Shown here in pieces: positions 5,384-53,219 of a stretch of DNA of 64,000 bases (positions are counted from its first letter, which is position 1; each line of letters starts with the position of its first letter). Source of the stretch: Phaeosaccion multiseriatum. Its lineage: Eukaryota > Protista > Ochrophyta, other classes. Below the pieces are notes generated by a model that saw only the letters and a list, made by a program, of their open reading frames with translations, was not told the origin of the DNA and did no database searches. The DNA lies in contig OZ218957.1 of NCBI GenBank assembly GCA_965112735.1, positions 3,410,001-3,474,000 of the forward strand, in the 5' to 3' direction. The position numbers were made by a program, and so were the translations under genes.

Positions 5384-5717
5384 CGGCTTTCAACCCCTCC
5401 GCATCCTTGTCCAAGAAATTTGCTCCCGCCCTTTGGGCCACCAAGCGATAAGAGAGTTCAGTTCAGTTCAAGGGAGAGTAAAGAGAGAGAGAGAGAGCAG
5501 AGAGCGAGAGAGAGAGAGAACGTGCGCCAGAGCGCGAGAGCGAGAGCGAGAGTGAGTGAGAGAGAGAGAGAGAGAGAGGAGGGAGAGAGCCGAGATTTGA
5601 AGTGGATTTATTGACTTAGACACATCAGTGTATCACCAACGTGCTTACTCAAAGAGAGGACAATTTCCCCCTTTTTTTTTCCTCTCCTCCTTGTCTCCGC
5701 TGCCGGGGCTTTTGCCG

Positions 5718-5875
5718 TCGACCCTGGACAAGGTTACAGTGTGCGCCGGCCATAAATCAGTAATCAGGCCGGCTGGCGCCAATAATCAGTAATCAGGCCC
5801 GGCTGGCGCCATAATCAGTAATCAGGCGGGCTGCGCCGGCCGAATCAGTAATCAGATAACCTTGTCCAGGGTCGA
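5718..5875. mobile_element. 158-bp MITE with 19-bp TIRs (TCGACCCTGGACAAGGTTA) and 6-bp TSD TTGCCG
   Basis: Perfect inverted repeats at 5718-5736 and 5857-5875. TTGCCG directly flanks both ends (5712-5717, 5876-5881). The interior has 4 x AATCAGTAATCAG alternating with GCCGGCTGGCGCC-like motifs. Confidence 0.9.
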
Positions 5876-6289
5876 TTGCCGGGGCGGCGTGCAGGCTCTT
5901 ACCGTTAAGAGTGTTGAGTGTGGCCTTCTCTCTGTGCATACCCATACACCTCTCCTGCGTGGACTTGAATTGAAGCTCAACAGCAGCTTCTTCCTCTCCC
6001 ATACTTATTCTGCTTCTCAGCACTTGCAGGTACGGCAGGGCTTAGATGGCACTCGACGGTGCCCACCCACGAAGCTTCCTGTAATTCCAAAACACATGGC
6101 TGCCCCCCCTCTCTGCCGAAAGACCCTTCACCATCCATGAAAGAGGCCTCTTTGCCAAGGCTCCTTCCCGACGTAACGCGCTCACAGCGCCCTCCTTCGC
6201 CATCCGCTGCCATGTACAGAGAGTCCAAGGTCCTTCGTCATATACTGCCATCCACCCCGACGATTTGCTCTCCTCCTTCTCCGCCCATG

Positions 6290-12272: not shown

Positions 12273-12323
<51 letters not shown>

Positions 12324-16223: not shown

Positions 16224-16396
16224 CTTCAACCAAACGAGAGTGGAGATAAGCAGGTGAAAGAGGAAGCAAACGTGTTAGTCGTCCAATTTGGCGACGACGA
16301 AGGACCTTCTTGCTTCCTTGCGAGCTCACAATAGCACTATTAGGTAGCAAGGAGCATCGCTCCCTGCTCCTCAAGGTGAGAAAGGCGCTGGTAGCG

Positions 16397-26414: not shown

Positions 26415-29400
26415 ATGGCAAGAAGGAAGGGCCCGGGTAGACGTGGCTTTTTGAGAAGGCCTCGCCCACCAACTGACAAGGCGGGAGTTTTCAAAATTTT
26501 GCCTCTGCTTGTGCTCCTGGGAGCGGCGACGGCACCCCCCAGGGCTGCCGCTGCTGCTGCTGGATATCACTATGCCGCCTTCGCTGGTCCGCAGCCTGTG
26601 CTCGGCCGGTTCGTTGCGGCCAAGGAGGACACCGAAGGATGGAAGTCCCCTTTCAAATGCGGAACGTGCAAACCTGATGCACGAGGGACCTTCCGCACCG
26701 ATACGCGGCGAAGGGTGACCGGGAGAGGCCTTGGACACCCAGGAAGGGAGACAGGCAACGGCCCGTCCCTGCTGCCGCCAGGCAAAAGCAACGGCAGGAG
26801 CAACAGCACGCTAAAGGCAGGGCTATTCGGAGGACTGATTCCGCAACGAACTGCCACTTTGCCCCGCGGCGCTGAGCCCTTCACTCTTGACTGTCCCTTG
26901 TTCGAGCTGCCCACGCCCTTCAACTCCGACGGAAGTATCGACTGGATGAGCCTAGCAGGGCTGCTGGAGTTCTGGAGCGAGGCGGGCGTGAAGGCGGTGC
27001 TGTGCAATGGCTTTGGCGTTGGAGAAGGACAGACCCTGACGGCCGAGGAGCGAACCAAGCTCTATCTCTTTGTGCGCAAGAAGTTCCAAGGCACTGTGGT
27101 GAGTGGCAAAAGATAGAGAGATGGGGGGGAGAGGATAGAGGAAGTGAGAGGAGGGAGGAGGGAGAGAGGAAGGGAGGGGCGTGAGAGAGGGGGAGGGAGG
27201 AGAGAGAGTGGCGAGAGAGAAAAGGAGAGCGCTGAGAAGCGACCACCTATTGCACTCAATCTGTGACCAGAAGGCCTTCATGGCAAGAATTTGTCATTTT
27301 CAAATATTTTGTTCTCCAGTGTCCGCCTGTGCACGCGTGGCACACGCACACACACCGCCCTTGACCCCAACCTCCCTTCCTCCTCCTGCGCCCCCTCCTA
27401 CCACCACTGCGCAGATCAACAACGTGAGTGCGTGCTCGGAGGGAGAGGTGGCCAAGTCCGCGGCCTTCAGTGCGGCAAACGTCGGAGGCCGTAGTGTTGA
27501 CGCATTGCTGCTGCTGCCACCCCTCCTCTTCCCCCTGCCCGACGACGGCTTGGAGGTGTGGTTCTCCAGGCTGCTCTCCCTCTGGCGCGAACCCACGCTC
27601 CTGTAAGTCAGCAACAATAACAACAACAAGGGAGAGGGGAGAGGAGAGAGGAGAGAGGAGAGGAGTTCTATCGTATGTGTGTGTGGGCCCACAGGAATGA
27701 ACACATGCCTGGGTTTGATCCTCTTTCATTTCTCTCCCGCCTCCTCTCTCTCCCTCTCTCCCTCTCTCCCTATCTCTCTCCCTGTCTGCCTGCCTATCTG
27801 CCTATCTGCCCGTCTGCCTGCCTATCGGCCTGCCTGACTCCGTGCCCTCTTGTCTTCCTCCCTCCCTGGTCCTCCCTGGCTGCCCTTTCATCTCCACTCC
27901 CCAGATACAACCTGCCCCTGACGGGCAACAGCATCTCCCCTGCCCTCTACGAGCGCCTTGCGAAGCGCTTTCCTCACGTGCGCGGAGTAGTGACGGCACC
28001 CAAGAGCAACGGCAGATACAGCACCATGAGCAGCATCAGGAGCAGCTACAGTGGGGTGGTGCAAGGAGGTGCGTCCAACAGACAGAAGTTTCCTTTCCTT
28101 CTTCCTTCCTTCCATCCTTCCTTCCTTCTTTCCTTCCTTCCTTCCTTCCTTCCTTCCTTCCTTCCTTCCTTCCTTCCTTCCTTCCTTCCTTCCTTCCTTC
28201 CTTCCTTCCTTCCTTCCTTCCTTCCTTCCTTCTTTCCTTCCTTCCTTCCTTCCTTCCTTCCTTCCTTCCTTCCTTCTTTCCTTCCTTCCTTCCTTCCTTC
28301 CTTCTTTCCTTCTTTCCTTCCTTCCTTCCTTCCTTCCCTCAATAGAGTCGACATGCCATATCGAGTCACAGCTGCCCTCCCCCCCATCACCAACCCCCCA
28401 ACCCCCATCCTCCTCTCACCCCCCGCTCGTCCCTCACCACCAAGGAGGAGCAGGAGGAGGAGAAGGGAAAGAGAGTGGCATGTTCGCCGATGCTCTCGCT
28501 CTGCAAGCGACAGACCCCTCCCTGCCCGTGCTCCTGGCGGGTGACGGTCTGTTCACCCCCCCCAAGGGCCTCGGGGCTGTGGTGGGGGTCGGAGGGAGCT
28601 GTCCAGAACTCGTGCTCCGTGCCGCCGCTGCCGGATCGGCGGCCGCAGCCGATTCAGCCGATTCAGCAGCTGCCGCCGCCCAAGGAAGCTCTGTGGGCTC
28701 TGTGTCTGGGGCGAAGCAGCAGGCCTTGGAGGACAGCGGTAAGAGGGGCTTGCTTTGCTCGCATTTCTTTAGTGTGCAGTTTCAGTTTGTGTTGGCAGGG
28801 TGGGGGCCTTGTCTTGCTTCTCACCTTCGCATCTCTCTCTCTCGGTCTCTGCCCTTGTTGTGCTTCTCACCCTCTATCGATCTCTCTATCCCTCTCTCTG
28901 TGTGTGTCTCTCTGTCGTGCTGGCCTCCGGTCCCTCTCTATCCCTCTCTGTCTCTTCGACCCCTATTTTTTGGCTTTGCTCAAATTGTTCGGTCTATCTC
29001 TGCGCTTTGCTGTTGGCACCTCGTGGCCGTTCCTCCCTCCCTCCCTCCCTCCCTCCCTCCCTCCCTCCCTCCCTCCCTCCCTCCCTCCCTCCCTCCCTCC
29101 CTCCCTCCCTCCCTCCCTCCCTCCCTCCCTCCCTCCCTCCCTCCCTCCCTCCCTCCCTCCCTCCCTCCCTCCCTCCCTCCCTCCCTCCCTCCCTCCCTCC
29201 CTCCCTCCCTCCCTCCCTCCCTCCCTCCCTCCCTCCCTCCCTCCCTCCCTCCCTCCCTCCCTCCCTCCCTCCCTCCCTCCCTCCCTCCCTCCCTCCCTCC
29301 CTCCCTCCCTCCCTCCCTCCCTCCCTCCCTCCCTCCCTCCCTCCCTCCCTCCCTGGCCTATTCTCATACACTCCCTCTTGTGCGCACCTCGCATCCGCCC

Positions 29401-32400
29401 CTCTGTTGCCTCTGCCCCCCTCGCCGTGCTGCCCTACGCCTCAGCCTACGCCTATCAGCTCGATGTCACAAGCGGGGGAGGACTGCCCTCCCTCAAGACT
29501 GCAATCAGCAAGCGAGTGCCTGGCTTCGGCCCTTACACTCGCCTCATTGAGTGTCCAGAGCCGCCCCGCATGGCAGGGACCGTCATGGAGGAACGCCAAG
29601 AGGAGGAGCCTCCGCTGATGGGAGAGGCATTCGGCCCGGAGGAGGCCTCTCCCACCGAAACGCTCGAAACGCCGATGCGCGAGGGAGGCGCCGGGGGGAG
29701 GAGTGAGAAGAGGTCCAGACGAGCAGCAGCAGCAGCAGAAGAAGAAGAAGAAGTGGAATCACCACTATTCGTACCCACGGAGGTAGTGACTCCGACGGAG
29801 GCTGCTGCTGGTTCTGGTGGTGCTGCTGGCACCGCTGCTACTGCTGGTGGTGGTACTGGTGCTGCTGCCCCTCCTCCTGCGGCCCATACCCACACGCCTC
29901 ACCGGCCGAAGGGATACGTGGTCGAATCCGTCGTCGACTCCCGTGATCCCCGACCTCCCTCAGACCCTGCCCAACAGGCCAATGTGAATGTGGTGTGGGG
30001 GGACAGGAACGGACAGACGGTATTCAACGGCAGCGGCAGGGGTAGCGGCAGGGGCAGCGGCGTCGCCAGGGACACTAACAGTGGCGGCAACATGTATCGA
30101 CCGTCGGGGTACGGGGTGGATGCGAAGGTCGAGGCGCAGGCCGAGGCGATACGAGAGAGGGAAGCACGCCTGGCGGAGCAAGCCGAGCAGGAGCGGCAGT
30201 GGAAGAAGGAGCTCGAGGAGCAGCGGAAGGAGGAGGAAGAGCGGCGGAAGATGGTGGGGCGTGCGCAGAGACAGCAGGCAGAGGCCTGGAAGAAGCAGCT
30301 CAAGGAGCAACGGGACGCGGAGCAGGCGCGGCAGAAAGAGCTCTGGGAGCAGCAGCAGAAGGCGATTCAGGAGCAGCAGCTGCAGTTGGCGTTTCAGGAG
30401 GAGAAGCAGCGGCAGCAGCAGTTGAAGATTCGAGAGCAGCAGCAGCAGTTGGTGAAGGAGGAGGAGCAGCGGCAGCAGAAGTTATTCCAGCAAGAGAAGC
30501 AGCTGCAGAAGGAGTTGGCCGAACAGCTGAAGCAGCAAAAAATGGCGAAAGAGAAGCAGCAGCAACACTTGGCGATACAGGAGGAGAAGCAGCGGCTGCA
30601 GCAGTTGGTGATCAAGAAGAAGGAGGAGCAATTGACCAAGAAGGAACAGGAACGGCAGCAACAGTTGGCGAAGGAGGCGGAGAAACAGCAGGAGCAGTTG
30701 GCGAAACTGGAGGAGAAGCAGCAGGAGCAGCTGGCGAAACTGGAGGAGAAGCAGCGGCAGCAGCAGAGGGCCATCGAGGAGGAGAAGAAGCGGGTGAAGG
30801 AGCTGGCAAGGCAGGAGGAGGAGCGCCTGCAGCAGTTGGCCAAGCAGGAGAAGCAGCGCCAGAAGGAGTTGACCAAACTGGAGGAGAAGCAGAAGCAGCA
30901 GGAGTTGGCCATACAGAAGCAGCAGCAGCAGCTGGCCAAGCAGGAGGAGTTGCGGCAGCAGCAAGCAGCGAAGGATTTGGCGAGACTGGAGGAGAAGCAG
31001 CGGCAGCAGCAGTTGGAGATACAAAAGCAGCAGGACCAGCTGGCGAAGCAAGAGGAGGAGCGACTGCAAGTTTTGGCGAAGCTGGAGGAGGAGCAGCGCC
31101 GGCAGAAGCAGCTGGTGATGGAGGAAAAGCAACGGGTGAAGGAGTTGGCCAAACAGGAGGAGGAGCTGCAGAAACAGAAGCAACAGCAGCTGTTGGCGAT
31201 TCAGGAGCAGCAGCAGCAGTTGGCGAAACAGGAGCAGCAGCGGCAGATGGAGCTGGCGAGAAAGGAGCAGTTGGTCATACAGGGGGAGCAGCAGCAGCGG
31301 CAGAAGCAGTTAGCCATCGAAGCGCAGAAGCAGAAGCAGCAGCAGCTGGCCATTGAGGAGGAGAAGCAGCGACTGCAGACGCTGATGGAAGAGGAGGAGC
31401 AGCAGCGGAAGCAGCAGCAGCTGGCCATCGAGGAGGAGAAGCAGCGGCTGCAGAAACTGATGGAAGAGGAGGAGCAGCAGCGGCAGGAGAAGAAGTTGGC
31501 CCTGGAGGAGCAGGAGCGGCGGCAAACGTTGGCGAAAAAGGAGCAGCTGGCGATACAGGGGGGGTTGAAGGAGCGCCAGCAGCAATTGGCCATACAGGAG
31601 GAGGAGCAGAAGCAGCGGCAGCGCGCGATAGAGGAACAGCAGCAGCTGCTGGCGAAGCAGGAGGAGCAACGACAGCAGCAGTTGGCCGTACAGGAGGAGC
31701 AGCGACAGCAAGAATTGGCCATCGAGGAGGAGAAGAAGCGGGTAAAGGAGTTGCTCATTGCGGAGGAGAAGCAGCGAATCGCGGAAGAGAAAAAGCAACA
31801 GGAGCAGTTGGCGATTCAGGAGGAGGAGCAGCGGCAGCACCAGCTGAGGATACTACAGGAGGCGCAGCAACGGCGACAAGAGATGGCCAAAGAGGAGGAG
31901 CAGCAGCGCAGGAGGAATTCAGAGTCCGCCTTGGAGGGTCTGATGAAGGAGCAACGCCTCAAGGAGAAGCAAAGCAAGGCGGCGAGACAACCCACACACT
32001 ACCCCAGACCCCGCTACGGAAGGTACACCCCGGGCGAGGAAGCCGACGCCGCAGCAGCTGCCACCGCCACCGACCGCACGAGACGACCCGCCACAGAGCG
32101 CAGGGGCCGAGGCCGGAGTGCGGATTTCCCGGCAGGTACGTTCGTACGTTTCAGTTCTGGTTATGACCATAGTAGCTGGTTGGGTAGGTTTACACTGCGT
32201 TTCTGTGCCCTCTGCCCGTTGCCCCGGCCTTTGGCTTTGCCCCTTTGTTGTGTGTGTCGCCACAGCGCCCTGCCCTCACCAACTGCTTCTATCTGTTCAC
32301 CTGTATCACCAACCGCTGTATGTGTATCACGTCCAACAGCTCCCCGAACGGCCACTGCCACCGCCACCGCCAGGAGGGGCTCAGCGGTCGGCTCCGAGGA

Positions 32401-32626
32401 TGGCAGCAACACGTACCGCGAGAAAGAGCTCGAGATCTTCTTCAGTTCCAAGGGTATTGAAGGGCAGGACGCGGACTCCTTCGATTGGATATCGCTCCGC
32501 AAGTCCAGTAATGTGTACGAAGAGTATCAGCAGCGCATGGGGAGGGAGAGGAGGGGCAAGAGGAGTGCGTCCAAGGCGACCAGCAGCAGCAGCGGCAGCC
32601 GTAGCAATAGCTACAGGGGTTGGTGA
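26415..32626 (+). CDS. DapA/DHDPS-like TIM-barrel protein (catalytic residues absent) fused to a ~600-aa Q/E/K/R coiled coil
   Basis: LPTPFNSDGSIDW..GVKAVLCNG..GEGQTLTAEER, DALLLLPP, LL|YNLPLTGNSISP..LAKRFPHVRGV, LLAGDG and LKTAISKR. The open frame continues into the 30130-31980 coiled-coil repeat. Confidence 0.75.
29032..29354. repeat. (CCCT)n microsatellite in intron; similar arrays at ~46550-46895, ~50030-50245, ~58793-58925, ~62617-62748
   Basis: Direct reading of uninterrupted CCCT units. Confidence 0.98.
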
Positions 32627-37324: not shown

Positions 37325-37399
37325 TCGACCCTGGACAAGATTACGGTGTGCGCCGAGTAGTCAGGCCGGCTGGCGCCGGTCATAATCAATCAGTTATCA
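37325..37399. mobile_element. Truncated left end of the TCGACCCTGGACAAG MITE family, interrupted by the 8.36-kb transposon
   Basis: TCGACCCTGGACAAGATTACGGTGTGCGCC matches 5718-5747 with 2 mismatches. It is followed by GGCCGGCTGGCGCC and AATCAGTTATCA, and continues as TTATCAGGCC after 45755. Confidence 0.8.
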
Positions 37400-37430
37400 T
37401 CGACCCCTGACGTGCTATTATGCTATCTGC

Positions 37431-37560
37431 GATAGCATGCTATTGGGCGCCCCGGCGCCCAATAGCATGCTATTTGCACTCGGCGAATAGCAGATAGCAC
37501 GCCGGCTGGCGCCGGCGAATAGCAGATAGCACGCCCCGTCGCGCCGGCGATAGCAGACGC
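37431..37560. repeat. Left subterminal repeats of the transposon (ATAGCAGATAGCAC / GCCGGCTGGCGCCGGC) including a 20-bp-stem palindrome
   Basis: ATAGCATGCTATTGGGCGCC-CC-GGCGCCCAATAGCATGCTAT at 37432-37473, followed by ~31-bp repeat units. Confidence 0.9.
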
Positions 37561-37729
37561 CCTGCGACAGCCTTTCCACTCCTAGCTGCCTGCCTAATCA
37601 GCATACGTCGAGCGCAGAGAGTATGCGAGCCTTCAGTCTTATATTACCAATACAATGGTGGCTGGGCGAACCTTGGCGTTCCCCTCTCCCCCCATCTCCC
37701 TCTCTCGCGAGGCAGCCATCTCTCCTTCA

Positions 37730-40542
37730 CTAACCCAGGACGCACTTATGCAAGGCCGAGTTGTAAACGTCGGGCAAGGAACCGTTGCGCATCCCGGAGC
37801 TCAGGTACGCCCGAAAGAGGCGAGTTCTCTCTGCCTCATACTCTTCGCAGGTCAGACACGGCAGCCCACACGCGGCCAAGAAGCGGTCCACGGTCTCCTT
37901 CTTTGCCCCCGCCGCACTAGACAAAATCGCTACACCGTCGTCCCTTTCCCAGCTGTTGTCTTGCTCAACACCATAGAGCACTTTGCGCATGGGGCTGGTG
38001 TCTGCCACAGCCAATTTCGACATGAATAGAGCTGTTGCCGGACCGCAAGAATTCGAGCCGGCCTTCTGCTGTGGCACACCAACAAAGACCTGCCGGAATC
38101 GGAGGGCTGCCGTCCCAGGGGCTCTTTCGTCCTCCATGACCTTCTCCACATACACCTGCGTCGCTTGGAGCACTCGCTTCGAAGGGTGGTGACCGAGGCG
38201 CCCATTTCGGACCGTATCAAAGTGCAGAATGTACGCCATAGCACCCTCCCCGTCGTCACTAGCTGCAGAGGTAGGTAGAAGGACAGCGACAGTCGAGAAA
38301 TGGCCGCTGAAACTCGCAGGGAGGACGAGGAGCTCACACTTCGTCATTGTAAGACCAGACTCCCTGTAACCTTTCGGCAGGAACCCTTTCGGAGCCGTCG
38401 CCAACACGTTGGGCATGGGGGAGTTCTCCACAGCTGGGTTGAAAATGTGACCAAGAGACGCGCACGGGAGTAGTGCCCTGTTTCCGTTCACGGATACAGT
38501 GGTCATCATCGCGTCCAAAAAGAAGGAGGTGTACTCCCCCTTTTCCTTGTGCATGTCCTGCTCAGCGCCGAGGACAAGCAGCCTCGCCTTCATGTCCCCT
38601 GTCAGCTGCTCAGCTTCGGCCACTGATTGTGCCGCAGGCATGGCCCTGCTTTTCTTCTGGTGGGAAGAAGGGCTGCTGCCCCCCTCCTGCTCCTCCTCCT
38701 CCTCCTCCTCCTGCTCCTCCTCCTCCCCCCCCTCCTGCTCCTCCTCCTCCTCCTCCTCCTCCTCCTCCTCCTCCTCCTCATCATCATCACCACCACCATC
38801 ATCCTCCTCCTCCTCCTCCTCCTCCTGCTCCTCCTCCTCCTGCTTCCCCAACGCCGTCTTCAGTAGGAAGTGAGAGAGTGCAGCTTGCATGCTTTTCTGA
38901 CCGCTCGATGAGTGGGAGTCTCTGTGGCGCTTAACGCCAGACAAATGAGTCCACTGAGGCTTGTACTTGCCCTTCCCGGCGCTCTGACAAGCAGGCCTGG
39001 TGCACACAACAGATACCAGCATATCCAATGATGTTCTGGCGTGTCTGATGGAGAAGTTCGCTTTGGCCTCAAGCTGAATCAAAGCTGGCGTATGGATCTT
39101 CACGAAGCTTGCTGCATCACCGACCTTGCTTCCGCTGAGAGTTTGCATCTCCACATCAGGCATTTCCCGCAAAAGATAAAAGAACTTGGTTCCTTGCGCG
39201 TGGAGCCAGCTCTTCGCCTTCTTCGTCAGTGCCCCCTCTTGCCCCGCCTTCCCGCCTTTCGTCCCGCCGGCACTCTCTCCCTCACTATCACTGGTGGTCT
39301 CACTGACACGGGCAGCACCACCTCGATGACCTGCCTTCTTGGGTGGGGTATGGGTCGAAAAATCTGTGGCGCTGTCCAGAGATTGGGTAGGGAAAGACAG
39401 GCAAATTTGCACGTTCTCCTGCTGTCTCGCCCCTGATTTCGGGCGTAGCTCGCAGTACAGATCCAGTCTCCACCGTTTGTCGGGATCGATACGGCCCGGA
39501 GGGAAAGTGTAGAACGAGCGCACCTGTATTGGGTGTGTGTTGGAGAAAGAGACAGAGAGGGGCGGGGGGGGGGCGGGTTTAAGAAAGGGTTGCTGCCGTA
39601 GCAGACAATGCACAAACATCGAGAGGCAGTTGTACCCGACACGTACCACGCGGCGCAGGGAGACGTCGTCGCGGATTGTATCCAACCCTCTGCCACGTCT
39701 GAATGCCGTGGAGGCTCTGATCGTGATGTCGTTCTTCTTTTGTTCCGTCTGAAAGAGCAATTCGCTGGTCAAATGTCCACGGAAGGCCTTGAAGCTGGAG
39801 AATCGCTTGTCTTCATTAGCCAGCTGGAACGTGTAGGGCAAGGTCTCGAAGAGCTCGGTCGTGTTGCAGGACACCGATGTGCCGAGACTGAAATCAGCCT
39901 CGACGGGGTTGAGGCATCCTCTTGGAAATGTCCCCACATGCGCGAACATGAGAGGGGTAGGTTTTGCCTGTCCCATCCCTGCACTCAGGGGCAAGGCATA
40001 ATCGAAGTCTTGTGCCTCAGAAGACGATGCCAAGGTTGCCGTACTCTGGAGATAGGTGTCCTCAAGCCGCCCCCCCTCCTCCCACCCCAGCTCGTGAGAA
40101 GCGTGTTGTGAATGGCTGCTTCGGCGTACTTCCCTGTCGCTGGGACTTTGGTTCCGACGCATTTTCCTCGCGCCTGCTGGGAATCCTCTTTCGCTGGGAC
40201 TGCGGCCCCGTCTCCCTTTGCTTCGACCCTTTTCTCCTTCCCTCCTCCCTCCTCCTCCTCCGGATCTGGGTCGGCTCCGACTCCTGCTGGTACTTCTCCC
40301 TGCCCTCCTCCTCTCGGTGTCCTTCCCCCTACTCCGACTCCTGCTGGCATTTCTCCCTCGCTTCCTCCTCTCACTGTGCTTCTCCCTGCTCCAACTCCTG
40401 CTGGCACTCCTCCCTCTCCTCGCCCTCTCAGGGGCCTTCTCCCGGCTCCGACTCCTGCTGCCAACTGGACTTGGCGTGCCTCTCCTGCTGTTGTAGTAGT
40501 CGCCCCCCCCCCCCAACTCCTCCCTCCATCGCGGCCAGACAT
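37730..40542 (-). CDS. Transposon-borne Ulp1/SENP-like (C48) cysteine protease with RS-rich N-terminus, putative Zn finger and acidic tract
   Basis: LLVLPASFSGHFS (His), YILHFDT (Asp) and VPQQKAGSNSCG (Gln/Cys). Also CTRPAC..HRDSH and 4 x 19-aa RS repeats. Probable in-frame 123-bp intron at 39524-39646. The ATG at 40542 needs a 1-nt shift in the C12 run at 40503-40514. Confidence 0.8.
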
Positions 40543-40638
40543 GAAGGACTTTTGAACCAGTGGGGCCCAGCCATGGGCCCAGCCAGCTATAAGCCAATAA
40601 AGATTCTGCCGTTTCACATTTGGCCACAAACAAAGGCG

Positions 40639-43600
40639 ATGGGCGCCGCGGGCTCGTCCGCGACAGAAGAAGACCATGGGCGGGTGGCTGTGACGGAAGA
40701 CGCGGACAGCGGGCGTGTAGAGCTTACCCGGGACGTAAACGATGTCGACATTGTTCCCTTTGCGATCCAATTCCATCTTGATCGAGGGCACTTTACTCGG
40801 AGTCACTTCATGTATCAAACGGTGCATCGTTGGGTCATGAACAGCGGCCTTTGGTCCAGGCGTCAGACTGTGGCCGCGAGCAAGCAGCTCAATGGCTACG
40901 AGACGCTGCGACAGTTTAATGAGACCCAGCAGAACGTATTTGGTTCAGCATGCTCCATGCTCTCCTATGGGGCACCCCGCAGAAAGAAGGTTCGTGGCCC
41001 CAACGTCTCCAGGGACCAGGCCATGAAGGACTACTTCCGCAGGGCGAACACAGGCGGCTTTCATCCGAGAGCACTCATTAGGCGCAGGCCTGGCCTAATC
41101 AAGAGGTACGGTCTGCAAGTCGAAGACATTATCAACGTCGTCAATGTCTTCGCCCGCTTCTGTGCCGACCAAGCCTACACTCTTGGCGACAAAGGCAACG
41201 AGAAGATTGTGGTTCCCGTGACTGTCCAAATGGATGGCTTCGTCATTGCCAAGGGCCATCATACTGATACAACCAGCCAAACCAATTGGGGCAATGCACA
41301 TCAGTTTGGAAATACAACACTGGAGCAGGCGAAGGCAATACTGGAAAAGTCTGATGCTCAGGTGCGTGGCGTCCCCTCCTTCCCACTGATCTTTCGGGGC
41401 AGAATCACTGTTGATCCATCGTCAATCTTAATCACGCCTCCTCGCTCGCTCGCTCACGCTGCAGCCCCGCCTTTGCTTCGCCTCCTGTCAACCCTCCCTT
41501 ATCGCTACTCGTTCTGTTCCAGCTGCGAGACGAGGACGCACCTAAGCTGGGTTCCGAGATGATGGAAGTTATGATGATGGATCTGAAAGGGGCATACACG
41601 GGCTCCATCGGTTTTCAGCTTCACACCGCAGGGGGTGACTACAAAAGTGTTGCCGCGAGCGTGACCGAAATCATGAAGGCGCTGCGTGTTTGCATCCCTT
41701 GTCTCGAGCTTTTCTGGCAGCGGATTCTGACGGGGGAGAACCCCTCGTGGGTGGAGATGGGCGAGGCGTGTGATTGCCACCAAGCTTGTCCCACCGGAGG
41801 GGAGGGTCCTTGCGGTGAAAGTGAGTGCGTTTGCGCGACTCAGTTCTCCAGCAGAGTCTGCTCGAGGTGCAAGAGGAAAGGGCTCGTGTGCAAGAGTCTC
41901 CGACCATTGTGCATCTCAACAGACTGTAATGGCGCACAGCTTGCCTTCATTCGGAAAATGGCGGCAAGAACCCTCGGAGAGGACGACCCCCTGGGGTGGT
42001 ATGAGGCACTGCCTGACGGGGCTCACCTTGTAAAGTGTGTTCGTGCTACGACATTCAATTGGTGGGTCGTCTGCCAGGGCTGGCTAGTCGGACTGCGAAC
42101 TCTTCGCGCCAGATTCCACGATCTGGACCCGGCTCGAAGTGAAGCAGTACAAGCCAATGTTGGCCTTGACGCCATTGAAAACAAGGATCCTTTCTCAGTG
42201 GAGAGCGCAATCGCTGTTACGACGGCGTCTCTGCAGTTGGCTCTACTCTCAGAGGAGGAGCGGGAGAAGCGCCGTGCTCTCGTGGGGGTGACCGTGTGCC
42301 CGGAGCCGTGGGGTTTCTGGCATCAGAACATGGCCTCGCAGACTCAGAAGCCGACTGGTATGGGCTACCATCATGGCTCTGGCATGATCTTCAACGCCGA
42401 TCGTTCAGGCAGGCATCTGCGCATGCTCAAGGCCCATCATGTGCCTTGTACCACAGAGGTTGTTCTGCGAGACGACTGCTTCCAGAGTCTTGGGTCTCTC
42501 GTCGTGGTTGGCGACTACGTGTACATGTGTGACAGTGGAGCGAATCAGATTTGGGTGGTGCATGTGCTGGCCGCTCTTCCAGGAAACAGGGGACCCCGCG
42601 CGGCGGCGGAGGAGGGCGACGATGATGATGACGACGACCAGCAACCGGACGGGCATGTAGCAGCGCGTGGTCGGGGGAGACAGACTCAGCAACGGCATTT
42701 GAATTTGAAGGCAGTGCCCTTGGTCCGTCGGATCCAGGAGCGTTGCACTTCTGAGGAGAATGTCCTCGAGGAGAGAGAAGAGGAGGGCATCCGTTGCCCC
42801 GTTGCCATTGCGCTTGCCGTGTCCTCTGAGCGCGCGTTCGACCTCTTTGTCACCCAAGAGGAACCTGGCGGGGGGGGAGCACTACACCGGCTCTCATTTG
42901 ACGCTGGCAACCCTTTTGCACCTGTGAGCGAGAAGCTGTGTGACCTACCCAAGGGACCTGCGGGCCTCACAGCACTCTCGCATGACTGCGTTGCCTGCAT
43001 CGCCGACAGCTCGCTTTTTGTCTGGGAGGGCAATGTGGAACGTGCCGGAGGACCAGAGGGTGGCAGTGGCAATGACGGAGATACACTCATGGCTCTGACT
43101 GATGACGAGGAAGATGGTACTGTTGAGAAGCCAAGGCGCGCACACCTCACGTGCGTGAAGTCTCACGTGGGGACTCAGCCTTGTGGACTCACGTTGGCCC
43201 CACCCGGTGCATACGATGATGAAGATATGATCGTCATCCTCATGCTAGATGAAGGTTTGCATGCGCTTGTCAAGGTTCTCCTTCGTCGTGACAGTGGGGT
43301 GCTAAGCTGGAAGGGATCATCCGTGCTGATGGGCGGACAGGGAAACACAGAACCCGGAGAGAGCACTGCCAGCGGTACGGCATCGAAAGTACCTTTGTTC
43401 AGACCTACGTTCGGCTGCTTCGTGTACAACGCTTTCTTCTTGTCCGACACTGGAAACCAGTGCATTCGAATGATCTCGGACTGCTACGTCTACGCCCAGC
43501 ACCTCATCCCACTACAACGGATGTTGAGTGAGGCGTATCAGCTCCAGGGCGAAGACTTGGATGAGAATGGCAAAGACATGCAAAACAACGCACGCACGAT

Positions 43601-45376
43601 GGAGGAGAGCATTGCCAAGCTTCATGTGGTCGACTTGGCTCTCAGTCACATGGGGAAAGCGATATCAGCTGCCACAGGCAAATCCCTGGTCTCTCTCCAG
43701 GGCCCTGAAGGAATGCCATCACGCGAAGTTCGAGGTGCTATCAAGGCGAGCCTGCAGGCACTACCTCGGATGCTACATCGGATGCTTGCAGAGGTGAGAA
43801 GGGGTGTGCGTGTGTGTGCGTGAGTGCGTGAGTAAAAACGTCCGTGTCCGTGGGCGCGTGCGTTTGGAAATCAGCCTTGCCCTTTCGTCTCACGGCTTCG
43901 CTGTTCGCTCCTTGCTTGATGCTTCCTCGCTCATTTCCGTCAGCAGGGAGTGCCTCGCGGCATCGTGGAGAAGATGCAGATGAGGAGCGTTTTGACCCTC
44001 AATGTTGAGACTTTCTTCACGAAGCAAAGGGAAGGCCGCCAGGATGTTCCAGACGCTCTTGAGTATGCCCGAAGAAGGGGCCTTGTGATGCTTCAGGCTG
44101 CGAAGAAGGCCAACCCCAGCATGGGCTTTGCCTACTGCACAAGCAGCGTCAACAGCAGCGGTCGAAAGCTCAGGGCGGGATACCAGCTGGAGCAAAACGA
44201 GAGCAGATTGGTGGCTTCACCCGTGTTGAAGCGACCAAGGGTAGCGGAGAAGCTTGACGAAGGGCAACGCAAGCAGCGCAAGAAGGACACGCAGACGCTT
44301 CGCAATGCGGCGGCTCGTCTTAGGAAGGTTCCGCAGCAGCGTGTAACCAACAAGAGGAAGTACAATGTTGGAGCGGCCCCGCGTTCGGTGGCGTTTGCTC
44401 CCAACTCTGCGCAAAGCAACGACCCGAGTGGATACCTGTCGCGCTTGCATGAGAGCTCGGGAGCGAGGAAGCGCGGACAGAAAGGACGGAAGACCGGTGA
44501 ATCCGTCCGAACTCGCATTCTCTACAGGGCAAATGACGTTGTGATAGTCAGGGCAGACAAGGGGTCGGAGGAGAGCTTTTTCTTGCACAGCTTCGCGTCG
44601 ATCTTCGGAAGGAGGTGATCGTCTCGAAGAAGGGACGAGGCTCCAAGCAGAAGGTGGTTCCGGCAAAGCCTGGTGTTTCATACTTTCACGTCGCTGAACA
44701 GGACTCTACCGACGAGTCCCAGGACGGGGATGGGGCTGCAGCAGTCGTCTACGAAGTCGACGGCGGGAAAGAGGCTTCTGTGTCTTGTGCTGCCATTTAT
44801 GGCGCATTGCCCCGCTACCACGAAGCCATGTACATCGAAGGCTCACATGCAGCTTCAGGAGGGGTGTGCGCGCAGAGAAGGCTTCGGAGGTTTGCCATCA
44901 CGGAGGAGCAGCACGAGGAGTGCAAGCAGATTGTCAACAGAGAGGCGGAGGGCCAAGAGGTGGCCAAGGCGATGGGATACGCCCCCCCCGACCCAAGCGT
45001 GCACATGGGAGAGGACATGTCTGAGGACGATAGCAGTGACGGCGAGCAGGAGGCGCTGAACCTGAGAACACTGCGCAAGAACATCATCGGAAAGGTGGTG
45101 GGGGCGATGTCCTCACGTGGGCGCACGGTAAACAAGCCCGAGAGTTATGGGGCTTTGTCTCGTGGCACGGCAAAAGCAGCAGACTCTAGCTCCAGCGAAG
45201 CCACTGCATGTCTAGTCTGTCAGAAAGATGTTGACCACGACAAAATGTTGCTATGTGACGGCTGCGATGAGGAGTTTCACACGTACTGCCTGACCCCTCC
45301 CCTCTCTACGCTTCCTGAAGGGGACTGGTATTGTGACGGAGTGAATGCTGCCTGCCCTAGTGGTAAAAGTGACTGA
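40639..45376 (+). CDS. Putative DDE transposase (DxxH type) with Cys-rich insert, NHL-like beta-propeller insertion and C-terminal PHD finger; exons 40639-41361, 41523-43793, ~43947-45376 with a 1-nt frameshift near 44577-44581
   Basis: Candidate catalytic residues: VTVQMDGF (~41233), CISTDC (~41922), LPDGAHLVKCVR (~42015) and LTLNVETFFTKQR (~44007). NHL-like blades: PTGMGY..IFNAD, VYMCDSGANQIWVV, FFLSDTGNQCIRMI. PHD: CLVC..MLLCDGCDEEFHTYCLTPPL..GDWYC. Both introns are phase 0 GT..AG. Confidence 0.78.
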
Positions 45377-45624
45377 TTGGCGAGCACAATGTCGATCGGG
45401 CCGTCCGCCGGCTGAGCTAGCGGAGAGCCAGTCAATCACAGGGCGGAGAGGTAGGGGTGCACGGGCAGCAGGTCAGCCAGGCCAGGCAGAGGGTGGACCT
45501 TGATATACTCCCTTAGGCATACTATACAAGAACTGACGCGAATTAATGGCAATGAAACACGTGTGAGTTGCTTCCTCCGCTCCTAGCCCCCCGCACGCGC
45601 ACCCTCCCACCCCCGACCCCGGGG

Positions 45625-45724
45625 GGGCGAATAGCACAAAACGCCGGCTGGCGCCGGCGATAGCACATAGCACGCCGGCTGGCGCCGGCAATAGCAGATA
45701 GCACGCCGGCTGGCGCCGGCGATA
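45625..45724. repeat. Right subterminal repeats of the transposon, 3 x ~31-bp unit
   Basis: Three copies of CGCCGGCTGGCGCCGGC separated by (G/A)ATAGCA(G/C)ATAGCA. Confidence 0.9.
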
Positions 45725-46109
45725 GCAGATAGCATAATAGCACGTCAGGGGTCGATTATCAGGCCTCCCCCCCCCTTGGAGAAACCTATTCCCCCTTCGC
45801 GGTCCGGCGGCAGAAAAAACAGAAAAAAATATGAAACCCCTTTTCCTTTTTCCTCCCTCCCCTTCGGATGAAGTAAAAACTAGCAAAGGTGAAAAAAACT
45901 GAGTCCGCATGCCGGAAGGCGAGGGGACGCGTTCCAACAGTAGCACCAAGGGGGTGGGGAGTAGAGCAAGGGAGGCGTGTGAAAAGGAGGGAGAGGAGCG
46001 AGAAAGAGCATAGGGAAGATTGCACGTGGAAGATTGGGTGGAGAAGGCGGGGGAGGGACACAAAACAACCGACGACTGCGGGGTGAAGGAGAGCGACACG
46101 GGTGGAGAT

Positions 46110-49100
46110 ATGCATAACTCAATGGCGCCCCTTTGCAATGTGGACCGGGAGACTCTCTCTGGCGCCATATTTATTTACTGTGACATTGTCATCGCCTTCA
46201 GCTACTACGTCATCCCTCTCATCCTGGGTGAGGGACTAGTGCCGTCATGGCAGATGCTTCCACGCGTCCATAATGCGATGTTCTGATCATTCATGCCGAA
46301 CCCCCCCCCCCCACTCCTCCCTCCTGCGATGGGCTCTAAGACTTGCCTCACCCCCTCCGATTCCTAAGGACTGTGCATCGTCTCGCCTCGTCCCCACTGT
46401 CCGCAGCTCTACTGGTCAGGTTTAGCGAGGTGGATTTGAGCCTGCTCACGTCCACGTCCTCCTCTGTGGACGGCACAAACAGGATGCTTGTGCGCATCTA
46501 CGTGCTCGTGGTGCTCATTCTCCTCTTCATCGGTGAGTCTCACTCACTTTCCCTCCCTCCCTCCCTCCCTTCCTCACCCCATCAATCTATCGGACCAGCC
46601 GAATGTACATCCCTCCCCCGCTCACTCTCTCTCCCTCCCTCCCTCCCTCCCTCCCTCCTCCCTCCCTCCCTCCCTCCCTCCCTCCCTCCCTCCTCCCCCC
46701 TCCCTCCCTCCCTCCCTCCCTCCCTCCCTCCCTCCCTCCCTCCCTCCCTCCCTCCCTCCCTCCCTCCCTCCCTCCCTCCCTCCCTCCCTCCCTCCCTCCC
46801 TCCCTCCCTCCCTCCCTCCCTCCCTCCCTCCCTCCCTCCCTCCCTCCCTCCCTCCCTCCCTCCCTCCCTCCCTCCCTCCCTCCCTCCCTCCCTCCCCTCT
46901 GTATATGATAAGGCATGTGTGGCACTACCCACCTCTGTCACGGGCTGGCTGGCTACGCGAACGTGTCTGTGGGCCTTATGATCTTCATGGAGGTGTGCAC
47001 CGCTCTGGTCAGCCTCACCACCGCCGTCTACCTGGCTTGGTTCTTCCCTCAGATTCTGCCTTTCATCCGCTCCAAACAGCTGGGCAAGCTTCTGCAGTGG
47101 CAAGATGACCTTTACAAAGGAAGCATTCATCTCATCAGCACGCACAGCTTCGACGCCGATGCTCCGGTCTTCCTCACCGTCAATCCTTGCGCACCCAAGT
47201 TCGGTTTCTCCGAGAAAAAGCGTCTAATGGTACGTGAATTGGTGATACGGTACGTGTACTACTTGCCTTGGCATGGGCAGGTAAAGACACATGTGGGCAC
47301 TGATAGCAGTGACTTCAGCAGCAGCAGCAATGCTCCTGACACGGCACTGGCGAAAGAGCTTCTCACTACGCTTGGCAATGGATGGACCACCAGCGGCCCC
47401 TGTCACCTCTACCCGCCCCCCCCCCTAACCTCACCTCACACACACATACGTAAGTCTTAGGTTGATTCCTGTACGTCCCAAACCCCCTACCCTCCTCTAT
47501 CAACACCTGTATCACCAACAGGGCGAGAGCTTTTTGGACTTTGTCCATCCCGAAGATGTGAGGCTGGTACACTCGGAGCTAAAAAGAATCAAAGCCAGCT
47601 CGATAGGTAAGGTTCTAGCACAGTGCTTAAGGTTAAGTAAGGGTGTAAGGAGAAGGGAAGCACCACTTGTCTATTCTTCTCACTCTCGAGCACACACACA
47701 CACACTCGCCCCCCCGCAGCTCAATCCCGCGACAGCCGAGCGAGTCGTTTGAAGGGACAGAAACCTCTAAAGGTGCAAGACATTGACACGCTGAACCCCG
47801 ACCAGCACTCGGTGGAGAGCATCGAGTTCCGATTGCAGCCCCAACCGACGTGTACTGTTCCAGTGGAGAGCATTATAAGCTGCAGGGAAGAGATGGACTC
47901 GAGCTGGACTTTCCTCATCATCACACGCGACATCTCGCTAAGGAAGGCCAAGTGCGTAAGGCTCTGTGTACGGCCTTGGGGTGCTGGGGGTCGTTGCTCT
48001 TCTGAGTGCTTGCGGCAGGGATTGATGATGGCATTTAACGGTGTCGACTTGCTTTGCTCCTCACAATCGTACACGTAAAATGTAAAATGGTATTGTGCCA
48101 ACTGCTCAGGGAGACCCTGGAGGAGGAGCGGCGAGAGAGCGACATGCGCACGCGCCTCAAATACATCTCCTCCATCGCTCACGACCTCAAGACGGTGAGG
48201 CCCACAAGCTTGCTTATCTTACGTAATGCCCGTATTTACTTACGTAAGCCTTGGCCTTGGGCCGAGCCGGAGGGTGGGTGAAGCTGCTATACACGTGCCC
48301 CATCCATGTAATCACAGCTGGCATATTCTTCTGACCCTTCCCTTTACATGCCTTGCTCTGTGCAGCCCTTGGCAGTGTTCCAAATGAGCCTGGAGCTCGT
48401 CAGCAAGAAGAACAGCACCGACTCTGAGGACTTCAGCATCCTTAGGGATGCACAGGTCAGAGGGCAGAGCCACTGGAGGGAGGGAGGGATGGAGGGAGGG
48501 TGTATTTTATTTACGTAATATGGAGGGAAGGAGGGAGGGACGGGACGGGGAGAAATTGTATTGTACACGCCCGTCAGAGAGAGAGATTGTGTATGTGTAT
48601 TTTTGTGTGTGTGTGTTTTTGTGCATGTGTGAGTATGTGTCCTTCTTATGTGTATGTGAGTGCCTGTGTGTGTGCATGTATGTGTATAGTCACGTCCTCT
48701 CCTCCATATTCCCTCTTCCTCAAACTCCCCCCACCGCCCCCTACCCGTGTTGATTGTCTGTGATCGTCGCCAACCAATCCAAGCTCTCCCTGGAGCTGAT
48801 GAAGGTCACTGTCCATCAGGCAGTGGACATCGGCCGCTCCACCTCTCAGGGCATCGTCATCAAGCCCCAGGTCCTGACACCCACCCTCTGTCCTGACACC
48901 CATCCACCCTCTGTCCTGACACCCACCCACTGTCCTGACATCCACCCTCTGTCCTGACACCCACTCTCTGTCCTGACACCCAACCATCCCCCCCTGTCCT
49001 GATACCCCCCAGTACGATTCCGTGTCCGTTTCAAGTACCCTCCTAAAGTGCCAGCATGTCATCAGGGGATACAGCAAATCCGTTCCCGTCAGGTACGCTG

Positions 49101-50415
49101 CGTAGTGAAGGAAGCAACGGGCCCAAGCTCGGCTTCTCACACCCACCCACTCGGAACTTTTCTCTCTTCTCTCCCTCTTAGTCTAGTCTCTCTCTTTTCT
49201 CACTCACTCTCTTTACTTCTTTCTCTCTCTCTCTCTCTCTCTCCCTCTCATCCTTCTCCCTCTCTTCCAGCGCGGGGCCTGATAGCCACCACAATGGGAA
49301 TCCCCTCCACTCCGCCACGCCCTATTCACTTCACTCGCTGTCTGGAAGTGACTTCCCTGACTCACCCCATCCACTGCCATCCCATCCCACCACACCCCTC
49401 CTCCTCCTCCTCCCCTCCTCTCACAGATTCGTGCTCCAAAAGGGCCTGGCCGGCTGCCGGCTCATCACAGATGGCGAGTGGCTGTGGCAGATGATGATTA
49501 ACTTGTGCACCAACGCCTGCAAGTACACCTCCAAAGGGTACATCTCCCTCGAAATGGCCATGGTCGAGAAGGTCGGCAAGGATGATGGCAGTCAGACGAG
49601 CCACGGCGGCGGCAGCGGCGACAGGGGGGCCGGGGACAGGGACAGGGACAGGGGGGCAAGAGGCGATGGGAGAGGCGATGGGAGAGGCGATGGGGGGAGG
49701 GGCAAGGCGGAGAAGCACTTGATGGTGCTCGTAGCGGACACAGGGATCGGAGTGCCGGAGGGGCAAAGACACAAGCTATTCAGGCCCTTCTCACAGTTGC
49801 AGGAGTATCAGAACCAGGGCACGGGGCTGGGGCTTTATGGCATCAAGGAGAAGGTGTCCGTGCTTGGGGGTCAGTGCGGAGTGGAACCCAATTGGCCCAG
49901 GGTAAGGTCAAATCAATTTAGTTGGCGGGAAAAAGCTTTCATATGCGATGTGCTATGCGCGTTGCTCTGTCGACCGCCTCAAACTCTCCTCCCCCTTCCT
50001 CCTCCCTCCCTCCCTCCGTTCCTCCCTCCTTCCCTCCCTCCCTCCCTCCCTCCCTCCCTCCCTCCCTCCCTCCCTCCCTCCCTCCCTCCCTCCCTCCCTC
50101 CCTCCCTCCCTCCCTCCCTCCCTCCCTCCCTCCCTCCCTCCCTCCCTCCCTCCCTCCCTCCCTCCCTCCCTCCCTCCCTCCCTCCCTCCCTCCCTCCCTC
50201 CCTCCCTCCCTCCCTCCCTCCCTCCCTCCCTCCCTCCCTCCCTCCCCAGGGCTCAATCTTCTTCTTTACACTGCCCTATGTGGGGGACAATACAGGCATG
50301 TCAGAGGCGGTAGATGTGCAGGAGCCCTCGCCGTCTGCGGTGGAGGAGCTTCCCCTCCAGGACCTCCATTTGTCAAGGCTGCTGGACTTGCAGAGCGAAC
50401 GTTGCGCGAGAAATC

Positions 50416-50480
<65 letters not shown>

Positions 50481-50697
50481 CGAGCAGAGGAGGCAGCAGC
50501 CGAGGCAGTAGGGGACAACAGCAGGTCAAGGAGAACGAGCACCGGCGGGAGGGACAGCGCTGGAGACATTTCAAGCCATCGCACTGCCATTGCCAAGAAG
50601 GGGAGGGACAGCGCTGGAGACATTGCAAGCCATCGCACTGCCATTGCCGGGCTCGTCAGCGGCACTCCTCCGTTGGCAGACCATCAGGAAGGGGACG

Positions 50698-50739
<42 letters not shown>

Positions 50740-53219
50740 AGAAGGGCCGAGGCGGGGGGGCGGGCAGGGTCCGCACCGCTAGTGTAGGGTGCCGGCGGGC
50801 GGTGGAGGGCCACAACATTGACTCGTCGGGTAGCTCCACCGCGGCCTCAATCGCTAAGAGCTTGGGAGATGTGGGGCCGACGTTTCGAGCGCGTGCTGCG
50901 TCCACCTTTCGAAGGAACAGAGCTTCCGTGGTACCGGTCCCCACGGAAGAGTCGCCACTGCGGACTACCGCTACAGCAACTCCTGCTACCACTGCTGCTT
51001 CTGGGACTGCACACAACAACAGCATCAACAAGAACAGCAAGAACAACAACAGCAACAACCACAACAACAACAAGAAGAACACCAGTGTGGACTACAGCGG
51101 CGAGTGCTGCGACACGTTCATCTCCTTTGCCGCTACTTCCCTCCCAAGTGGGGCTGCGTGTGCCACCTCCACCCGCACTCTCATTCCCATGCCGCCGTCG
51201 GGGAGTATCGACCCAGACATAGTCGAGGCGGGACTGGCGACGGACCCTCCTCCTGTATCACCACCACGCAAGGGAAGCGTTCTCATCATTGATGACACCA
51301 TGTGCGTTCGTGTGTATTTATTTTGTGTTTGTGTGTACTCAAGCTCAGCGAAAGGTCACCCCCTTACATGACCCTCCTCTCTGCACCCACCCATTGACAT
51401 ACTACACCCCCCGCCTGTAACGTGCCTGCGTGGTGTCAGGACTGTGCGAACCCTTTTCAGTCGAGCGGCGATGAAGGAAGAGTACGAGGTCTGCAGTGCA
51501 AACAACGGTGAGTGTGTGCGTGCGTGTGTGAGTGAGTGAGTGAGTGAGTGAGTGAGTGATTGAATGTGCGTGCATACGTGCGTGCGTGCGTGAGTGAGTG
51601 AGTGCGTGAGTGAGTGAGTGAGTGAGTGATTGAATGTGCGTGCATACGTGCGTGCGTGCGGTGATGTTGCGAGTACACGTCCAATCGTGACTCGGCCACC
51701 CCTGTGTATGTCCTGACACCCCCCACCCCCGCGTATGTCCTGACACCCCCCACCCTCCTGTATGTCCTGACACCCCCCACCCGCCTGTGTGTCCTGACCC
51801 CGCCCACCCCTGATCACTCACTACAGGCGACGAGGGCTTGCAGCTGATGAAGGAGCGCGTGTTCTCTTTGGTCATGTGCGACCTCCAAATGCCCATCATG
51901 GACGGGGCCGAGTGCACATCCCGCCTCAGAGACTTCGAGAGGACGAGCGGGAGGAAGGAGAGGCAGATCATTCTCTCCATGTCCACCTCTTGCGATACCA
52001 TGGCTATGAATGCTTGTGTACGCTGCGGAAGTGAGTGAGCTGGTGCACTAGAGATTGGAGCTTGCGTGTTTGTTCCATCAGCCGAGCTGCTTCTCTTCTT
52101 GCTTGATTGCTTTGTTGCTTGGTTGCTTGGTTGCTTGGTTGCTTGCATGTGCTCACCCTCTCCCTCACTTGTCCCTTTTTGTGCCCCTTCCGTGCTTGTC
52201 CTCTTTTGCTTCTTTCGCTCGTCCTTACGGCAGTGGACGGCTTTGCGCCTAAACCACTCAAGTTTCAAGTTTTCGCGAAGGTGAGGCAGGCGAGGACCAC
52301 AACTGAAACTGGTAACGGCCCTCAGGTCGTGCTTACCCATGTGACTATCACCGTATGTTTAACCGTGTGCCTAACCGTATGTTTAACCGTGTGCCTAACC
52401 GTGTGTTTAACCGTGTGCCTAACCGTGTGCCTACAACCATGTGCAACGTGTATTCAAGCGTGTGCCTAACCGTGTGCCTAACCGTGTACTACCTGGCCGT
52501 GTGTCTAACCGTGTTTTTAATCGTATGCCTAACCGTGTGTTTAACCGTGTGCCTAACCGTGTGTTTAATCGTGTGCCTAACCGTACGTTCAATCGTGTGC
52601 CTAACCGTGTGTTTAACCGTGTGCTTAACCGTGTGTTTAACCGTGTGCTTAACCGTGTGTTTAACCGTGTGCCTAGCCGTGTGTTTAACCATGTGCCTAA
52701 CCGTGTGCTTAACCGTGTGTTTAACCGTGTGCTTAACCGTGTGTTTAAACGTGTGCCTAACCGTTTGTTTAACCATGTGCCTAACCGTGTGCTTATCCGT
52801 GTGTTTCTCCTTCTGGGTGCTGTGTCGTTTCATCTCCTCATCTCTCTCCGTAGCTGCTGGATGCGTACTCACAACGCGCGGAGGACGACGCCATTTGCAA
52901 CCACTCAGTTTCAGAGGCAAAAGAAAGTAGCCCTCAGCAGCAGTTGGTGATACAGCAGCACCAGCAGCAGTTGGTGATACAGCAGCAGCAGCAGCAGCAG
53001 GAGAAGGAGGAGACAGGGGCTGCGGCTGCTCCCTCTCCGCGCTCCGTCCGCTGGGTCGAAGTCAACACAATGAGCATGCAGCACGATGAAAGCAACGGTG
53101 AGGCGGCCGCACTGCAGGCAGAGGGGGAGCAGGCTGGGGATCATTGGCACCATCTTAGGTTCGGAGAGGTGAATGCGCGGGCACTGGCGGACGGGAGCAC
53201 TTTTGTCGTATGGAAGTGA
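46110..53219 (+). CDS. Ethylene-receptor-like hybrid sensor histidine kinase (ETR1-type TM domain, PAS-like, HisKA, HATPase_c, receiver); many exons
   Basis: TM domain: CDIVIAFSYYVIPLIL, LLFIG|MCGTTHL, CTALVSLTTAVYL..FPQIL. PAS-like: FLDFVHPED. HisKA: SIAHDLKT|PL. HATPase: INLCTNACKYT..VADTGIGV..LFRPFSQ..GTGLGL. Receiver: VLIIDD, VMCDLQMPIMDG, DGFAPKP. Confidence 0.9.
48871..49012 (+). repeat. ~20-bp minisatellite (GTCCTGACACCCACCCTCT-like) filling an entire intron; related array at ~51705-51800
   Basis: Seven GTCCTGA(C/T)A units lie between the exon end (IKPQ) and the next exon (YDSVSV). Confidence 0.85.
52350..52805. repeat. 12-bp tandem repeat (AACCGTGTGCCT / AACCGTGTGTTT), ~35-38 units, intronic
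   Basis: Direct reading. It gives the LTVC/NRVP periodic translations in the ORF track. Confidence 0.95.

Follow-up and report, generated by a model that had tools for sequence, protein, structure and literature searches.

Eukaryotic transposons mobilized by a transposase with an Asp-Asp-Glu (DDE) catalytic triad fall into few superfamilies, each of which has informed our view of transposase mechanism and of domesticated genes, such as RAG from Transib and THAP9 from the P element. The P element combines 31-bp terminal inverted repeats (TIRs) and an 8-bp target site duplication (TSD) with a transposase in which a THAP domain is accompanied by a GTP-binding domain inserted between strand β5 and helix α4 (PMC7776569). 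Dada elements have TSDs of 6-7 bp, a DxxH motif and large multi-exon transposases of ~1,400 aa, possess no TIRs, insert in multicopy small nuclear RNA (snRNA) or transfer RNA (tRNA) genes, and space their triad as D-68-D-176-E, with zinc fingers upstream of the first Asp and at the C-terminus (PMC3706591). Within hAT, whose transposases have a C/DxxH-type DDE domain with an insertion domain, the hAT6 group is characterized by a 6-bp TSD, and TSDs of 7 and 8 bp are reported for Kyakuja and Zisupton, respectively (PMC12730594); the Kyakuja-Dileera-Zisupton (KDZ) elements also occur in green algae, Tcr1 being of the Kyakuja type (bioRxiv 10.1101/2022.06.16.496473). Here we analyze an 8.36-kb element in a 64-kb stretch of contig OZ218957.1 of Phaeosaccion multiseriatum (the window), which most probably is a complete class II (cut-and-paste) DNA transposon and represents a separate, P-related lineage.

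The two 31-bp arms of the element (Table 1) are complementary without mismatch, the hexamer TTATCA flanks it on both sides, and the enclosed sequence measures 8,356 bp, in agreement with the original prediction, which had been derived from the sequence of the window. The same prediction had pointed to a separate miniature inverted-repeat transposable element (MITE) at 5718-5875 with TCGACCC ends and a different 6-bp TSD, and we find there 19-bp TIRs bounded by TTGCCG on each side, so that a 6-bp TSD is present at both complete elements of the window. By our own arithmetic, performed with no tool, a perfect 31-bp inverted repeat is expected by chance ~1e-10 times in 64 kb, and the chance of one 6-bp flank match is 1/4096; the perfect 31-bp inverted repeat and the two exact 6-bp flank matches far exceed chance. 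Considered alone, the large element would also admit a 32-bp TIR with a 4-bp TSD (TATC), as one extra base pairs. We rejected this alternative because the MITE, a further terminus at 37325 and a complete relative on a metagenome contig (L001, described below) all start with TCG, which makes TCGA ends with a 6-bp TSD the consistent reading. The interior is free of (CCCT)n and (CA)n tracts, as had been anticipated, and the sole arrays that Tandem Repeats Finder (TRF) detects there are a (CCT)53 run within coding sequence and a repeat with a 57-bp unit.

A full HMMER scan covering 1.84 billion representative proteins identified 104 relatives of the transposase, the best of which matches at full length with 33% identity (E 1e-90). 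Named relatives are all annotated as 'hypothetical' or left unnamed, and they originate from metagenomes and from one Priapulus caudatus; a word-index protein search with the transposase open reading frame (ORF) found no relatives, and an exact-product look-up of the window ORF returned no match. The catalytic triad follows the conserved order D...D(31 aa)DxxHxxK...E and is intact in the window copy, and the conservation of its residues among aligned relatives (Table 1) bears out the prediction of a DxxH-type DDE transposon. Once introns are removed, the first and second Asp (D1 and D2) are separated by ~176 aa, an interval that harbors a cluster of nine cysteines presumed to bind zinc, and D2 and the Glu by ~645 aa, an interval that includes an insertion domain with a nested six-bladed NHL β-propeller. 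The family profile matched NHL propellers in the PDB at 3e-17. Pfam scans of the family, comprising the window protein and 60 relatives, detected NHL in 11 of the 60 and a PHD finger at the C-terminus of the window protein, and found no transposase family above threshold in any of them. Accessory domains vary among the aligned relatives, with a SAP DNA-binding domain in 5/60 (best E 6e-8) and a PB1 domain in 1/60.

Structural modeling suggests a distant resemblance of the catalytic core to the P element transposase. The AlphaFold2 (AF2) model of a full-length relative (P0016), with a predicted local distance difference test (pLDDT) score of 82.8, places D114 on strand β1, D275 at the end of strand β4 and E839 on a helix, an arrangement known from RNase H-type transposases. 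Helical segments enclose the propeller (residues 381-726), and the C-terminus forms a β-rich domain. Foldseek returned only propellers for this full-length model, and because the propellers swamped the search it was rerun on the model of a propeller-free relative (P0018; pLDDT 84.3), which ends before the propeller and represents the N-terminal half of the protein. This second model has two matches at E≤0.001, both to the strand-transfer complex of the Drosophila P element transposase (6p5a and 6pe2; E 1e-5, ~434 aligned columns). The following matches, to TnsB, RAG1 and Transib, have E≥0.06, and Hermes is absent among the top 50. In the Pfam scans, PF21787 (TNP-like RNase H N-terminal domain) is the sole transposase family that recurs among the relatives; its matches cover the D1 region in 7/60 of them and stay below threshold (best 22.2 bits versus a cut-off of 24.6).

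The core of the transposase is P-like, but the element shows neither a THAP domain nor a GTP-binding domain, and its TSD falls short of the 8 bp of P elements. The original prediction that the element fits no superfamily was too strong, given that P is the only Foldseek match at E≤0.001 and that relatives show a weak P-type RNase H signal. More tentatively, and with somewhat less than even confidence, we suggest that the element represents an unnamed lineage of superfamily rank, sister to but outside P/THAP9, marked by TCGR termini, a 6-bp TSD, subterminal arrays of ~31 bp, a zinc-cysteine cluster in the RNase H domain and a nested NHL propeller, and distributed from green-alga-like genomes to animals (Priapulus). 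The further claim of an undescribed lineage is favored, not proven, by the fact that this transposase architecture is described neither in Pfam nor in the papers searched, in which a DDE transposase bearing an NHL domain is nowhere mentioned.

Several observations weigh against the main reading, a complete transposon of a P-related lineage. The evidence for a 6-bp TSD amounts to n=2, because one full copy and one MITE are all there is, and the 6-mers flanking L001 are unlike each other (CTTCAC and TCATCT) and hence provide no support for a TSD, a mismatch that may possibly stem from chimeric metagenome assembly. Template modeling scores (TM-scores) in the Foldseek matches reach only 0.30-0.36, the window protein itself has no Pfam transposase match, PF21787 included, no transposase emerged when PDB sequences were searched with profiles or individual ORFs, and the link to P at the level of sequence is weak. 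The transposase gene shows a single apparent frame change downstream of the Glu block, perhaps owing to a frameshift, a short intron that went unrecognised or an error in the assembly, so the window copy may not encode a full-length transposase. Finally, the assignment of the second gene discussed below derives from motif order with no database match, and the functions suggested below for propeller, PHD finger and second gene are presumptive.

The element might instead be a divergent member of P/THAP9 proper, nested within that clade, in which accessory domains were swapped and the target stagger was shortened. The P element transposase provides the best and only significant structural matches, and the sub-threshold PF21787 signal points in the same direction. 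Both systems share a split RNase H-like DDE domain, a DxxH motif ~30 residues past the second Asp, a large domain inserted at the equivalent position between strand β5 and helix α4, perfect 31-bp TIRs, a multi-exon transposase gene and subterminal repeats arranged unequally at the two ends, the TIR length, the repeats and the gene structure being as described for P (PMC7776569). The TSD, however, is 6 bp at both complete elements, not 8 (7-8), and the termini are of TCGA type. No THAP domain was matched in exon 1 or in the relatives, where neither a P-type GTP-binding domain nor the P C-terminal family was matched by Pfam, and the NHL propeller fills the insertion. The nine-cysteine cluster between D1 and D2, the spacing of ~176 and ~645 aa, the C-terminal PHD finger and the second gene set the element further apart, and Pfam P families are sub-threshold or absent, no member reaching the cut-off. 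On balance we regard membership in P/THAP9 as possible but unlikely.

A derivation from Dada, with TIRs kept or gained and the specificity for small-RNA genes lost, would account for a 6-bp TSD within the range of 6-7 bp, for the DxxH-type DDE domain and for a large, intron-bearing transposase near the ~1,400 aa of multi-exon Dada proteins. We consider it improbable. Dada lacks TIRs and targets snRNA or tRNA genes, whereas the element bears 31-bp TIRs and no Rfam or tRNA genes were found in the 64-kb window. By published description, Dada also differs in its D-68-D-176-E spacing and in the location of its zinc fingers, compared with a Cys cluster between D1 and D2 and a propeller ahead of the Glu in the element, and the Dada papers searched make no mention of NHL or PHD domains. 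Assignment to the hAT6 group is more doubtful still, to the point of being very improbable: the 6-bp TSD and the C/DxxH-type DDE domain with an insertion domain would agree with it, but the window protein and the 60 relatives matched neither the dimerisation nor the RNase H family that Pfam defines for hAT, the termini and domain set are unlike those of hAT, and in the Foldseek comparison the P element ranks first, with no match to Hermes among the top 50.

Two further superfamilies are set apart by their duplications. Kolobok generates a TTAA duplication, in contrast to the TTATCA and TTGCCG found here, a distinction drawn from the description of the TSD and not from sequence. KDZ elements likewise have large transposases with cysteine clusters, but their TSDs differ from the 6 bp seen here, and the Pfam results listed for the window protein and its relatives include neither KDZ nor CxC families; since the sub-threshold P-type domain is the only transposase family in those results, the KDZ and CxC models presumably went unmatched. 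A non-mobile pair of host genes flanked by chance inverted repeats, for which one could cite the single copy in the window and the lack of further copies in the collections scanned, is extremely improbable in view of a TIR and an exact duplication beyond chance, the nesting of the element within another TIR element, the same type of terminus and subterminal architecture in the MITE and L001, and the predicted DDE RNase H fold of the protein.

The subterminal regions of the large element are occupied by repeats with a unit of 31-32 bp, composed of a GCTAT-type doublet and a GC-rich spacer, GCCGGCTGGCGCC. This 13-mer occurs 7 times in the window, exclusively inside these elements, against an expectation of 0.14. 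Because the arrays run in the same strand orientation, the two ends of the element are non-equivalent. The MITE contains 29-bp units with a different doublet, of AATCAG type, and it therefore belongs to a sister family instead of being a deletion derivative of the 8.36-kb element. A third terminus, TCGACCCTGGACAAG, is located at 37325 and followed by a MITE-type repeat directly to the left of the large element, from which it follows that the latter landed 69 bp inside an older related element, its target being a subterminal repeat of another transposon. No right end matching the older terminus was found within the window, so the older element is either truncated or much larger. The MITE and the broken end represent one sister family with differing subterminal motifs, which presumably has its own autonomous partner. 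The large element is probably young: perfect TIRs and TSD and its nesting in an older element speak for the recent activity originally proposed, a proposal tempered by the recovery of one copy only and by the apparent frame change.

Regarding gene layout, the element had been described as containing two head-to-head genes ~96 bp apart. Their divergent orientation stands, but the first ATGs lie at 40162 in the minus-strand gene and at 40573 or 40639 in the plus-strand gene, which places the start codons ~410-480 bp apart, and the plus-strand gene begins at ~40639, not at 41559. Its first coding block, from 40639 (or the in-frame ATG at 40573) to 41361, aligns with the ORFs that encode the N-terminus in two relatives (E 3e-15 and 1e-13) and, by tblastn, with a further relative (P0008; E 2e-7). 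Intron 1 links this block in frame to the long ORF at 41523-43793, and the block carrying the catalytic Glu is reached in frame across intron 2. A minus-strand ORF at 39988-40944, along with the earlier gene boundary, was rejected because the plus strand in this region is the one conserved in relatives. On the minus strand, the 57-bp repeat between the divergent start codons would encode an Arg/Ser-rich stretch ahead of the first ATG of the second gene, and could be promoter, 5' untranslated region or coding sequence.

Independent loci reproduce much of this organization. L001, a JGI metagenome contig of 10,965 bp, holds a complete relative with the same gene order, a four-block transposase gene, a perfect 23-bp TIR starting TCGGCCCCGGAC, directly oriented subterminal repeats of 33 bp (x5.2 and x6.6) and a second gene that keeps the conserved C-terminal domain. 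Another contig (L003) ends within a 31-bp repeat array, and L004 has its second gene on the downstream instead of the upstream side of the transposase gene, still linked to it, so that linkage of the two genes is seen at three loci. Exact scans of metagenome contigs for the window TIR and the L001 TIR gave zero matches. Three ENA metagenome scaffolds of 17-20 kb (L005, L006 and L007) carry a distant transposase relative of 1,271 aa (P0128) in a dense, Pfam-blank neighborhood that is the same in three separate samples and in which no obvious TIRs were seen; these loci may correspond to a domesticated copy or derive from a large virus or a protist with a compact genome. In Priapulus caudatus (KQ715819.1), long imperfect inverted repeats, consisting of several blocks with arms ≤120 bp, are present at 433-1100 and 15676-16058 near the animal homologue (P0045), and do not bracket the annotated gene (10001-23170).

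Plant Mutator-like elements (MULEs) and CACTA elements carry genes for Ulp1-type peptidases, and the second gene of the element described here may be of a similar nature. Its conservation in relatives is confined to ~115 residues near the C-terminus, in which the order His, Asp, Gln, Cys, typical of CE-clan peptidases, is kept at three loci. From the order of these residues, we infer a candidate CE-clan (Ulp1-type) cysteine peptidase. Pfam yielded no match at E≤1 on the second gene and its relatives, Peptidase_C48 included, and neither a PDB sequence search with the domain nor a word-index protein search with the C-terminus produced a match. The likeness to the plant elements consists in an accessory gene with this residue order; the absence of a Peptidase_C48 match, a transposase that is neither MULE nor CACTA and the 6-bp TSD distinguish the element from them.

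Table 1. Coordinates of the 8.36-kb element, its components and related elements in the window.
Feature	Position	Strand	Evidence or detail
158-bp MITE (5718-5875) with TSD TTGCCG on each side	5712..5881	.	19-bp TIRs starting TCGACCCTGGAC; internal 29-bp repeats x3.6
Left end of older MITE-family element, interrupted by the 8.36-kb element	37325..37399	+	TCGACCCTGGACAAG..., one repeat unit
Left TSD	37394..37399	.	TTATCA; flank sequence
Left 31-bp TIR	37400..37430	+	starts TCGACCCCTGAC; complementarity to right arm
Left subterminal region	37432..37557	.	20+20-bp palindrome (37432-37473), then 32-bp repeats x2.4 (37481-37557)
Second gene	37730..40162	-	open frame of 810 codons from first ATG; acidic low-complexity middle encoded by (CCT)53
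Conserved C-terminal domain of second gene	37991..38335	-	His...Asp...Gln-x6-Cys in order; L001 E 9e-10, L004 E 0.002
57-bp tandem repeat x3.3 between divergent start codons	40274..40460	.	TRF
Transposase gene	40639..45376	+	~1,470 codons; four coding blocks as in L001; alternative in-frame ATG 40573
First catalytic Asp	41233..41235	+	motif DGxxxKxG; 43/43 aligned relatives
Intron 1	41362..41522	+	161 nt, GT..AG, in frame; block boundary common to L001
Nine-cysteine cluster, presumed zinc-binding	41691..41891	+	between first and second catalytic Asp; each Cys in at least 46/48 relatives
Second catalytic Asp	41922..41924	+	motif DCxGxQ; 51/51 relatives
DxxHxxK motif	42015..42035	+	31 residues past second Asp; H 53/53, K 52/53
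Six-bladed NHL β-propeller	42279..43481	+	nested in insertion domain between DxxH and catalytic Glu
Intron 2	43794..43943	+	150 nt, GT..AG, in frame; block boundary common to L001
Catalytic Glu	44007..44009	+	motif TLxVExFF; 32/38 relatives
C-terminal PHD finger	45209..45337	+	Pfam PF00628, E 4e-12
Right subterminal 31-bp repeats x3.5	45626..45734	.	strand orientation same as left array
Right 31-bp TIR	45725..45755	-	complementarity to left arm
Right TSD	45756..45761	.	TTATCA; flank sequence

If the transposase works as that of the P element does, its N-terminal helical region would bind the TIR and the doublet motifs of the subterminal repeats, and the split RNase H domain would cut both ends and join them to the target with a 6-bp stagger. 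The NHL propeller, predicted to sit in the β5-α4 insertion where P has its GTP-binding domain, is a probable contact surface for target DNA, chromatin or partner subunits. Recognition of histone marks, and with it a bias in target choice, is the probable task of the β-rich C-terminal domain and the PHD finger, and the product of the second gene is probably an accessory factor. As chromatin-reader modules, the PHD finger and the β-rich domain would point to chromatin-guided target choice. If a P-related lineage does carry a propeller instead of a GTP-binding domain, the insertion-domain slot would be exchangeable, raising the question of what the insertion domain does. The family is represented in public data by no fewer than 104 members, all unnamed, and Pfam has no model for it; its description would therefore help to annotate 'hypothetical' genes of algae, protists and certain animals.

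The G+C content of the window is 52-63%. On its left side, a host ORF on the minus strand (2195-4810) encodes an RMI1 N-terminal OB-fold (Pfam E 6e-17) ~900 bp from the MITE; a word-index protein search with one host ORF returned no match. The region 28000-32600 displays opposite skews in neighboring 2-kb bins (GC -0.34 followed by +0.34, AT -0.36 followed by +0.56), includes a 1,383-codon ORF with no Pfam match and is probably low-complexity repeat sequence. Directly to the right of the element, at 46100-51371, lies a host gene with a likely first exon from ~46111, in which the ORF 49431-51371 encodes a histidine-kinase-type ATPase domain (Pfam HATPase_c, E 5e-12).

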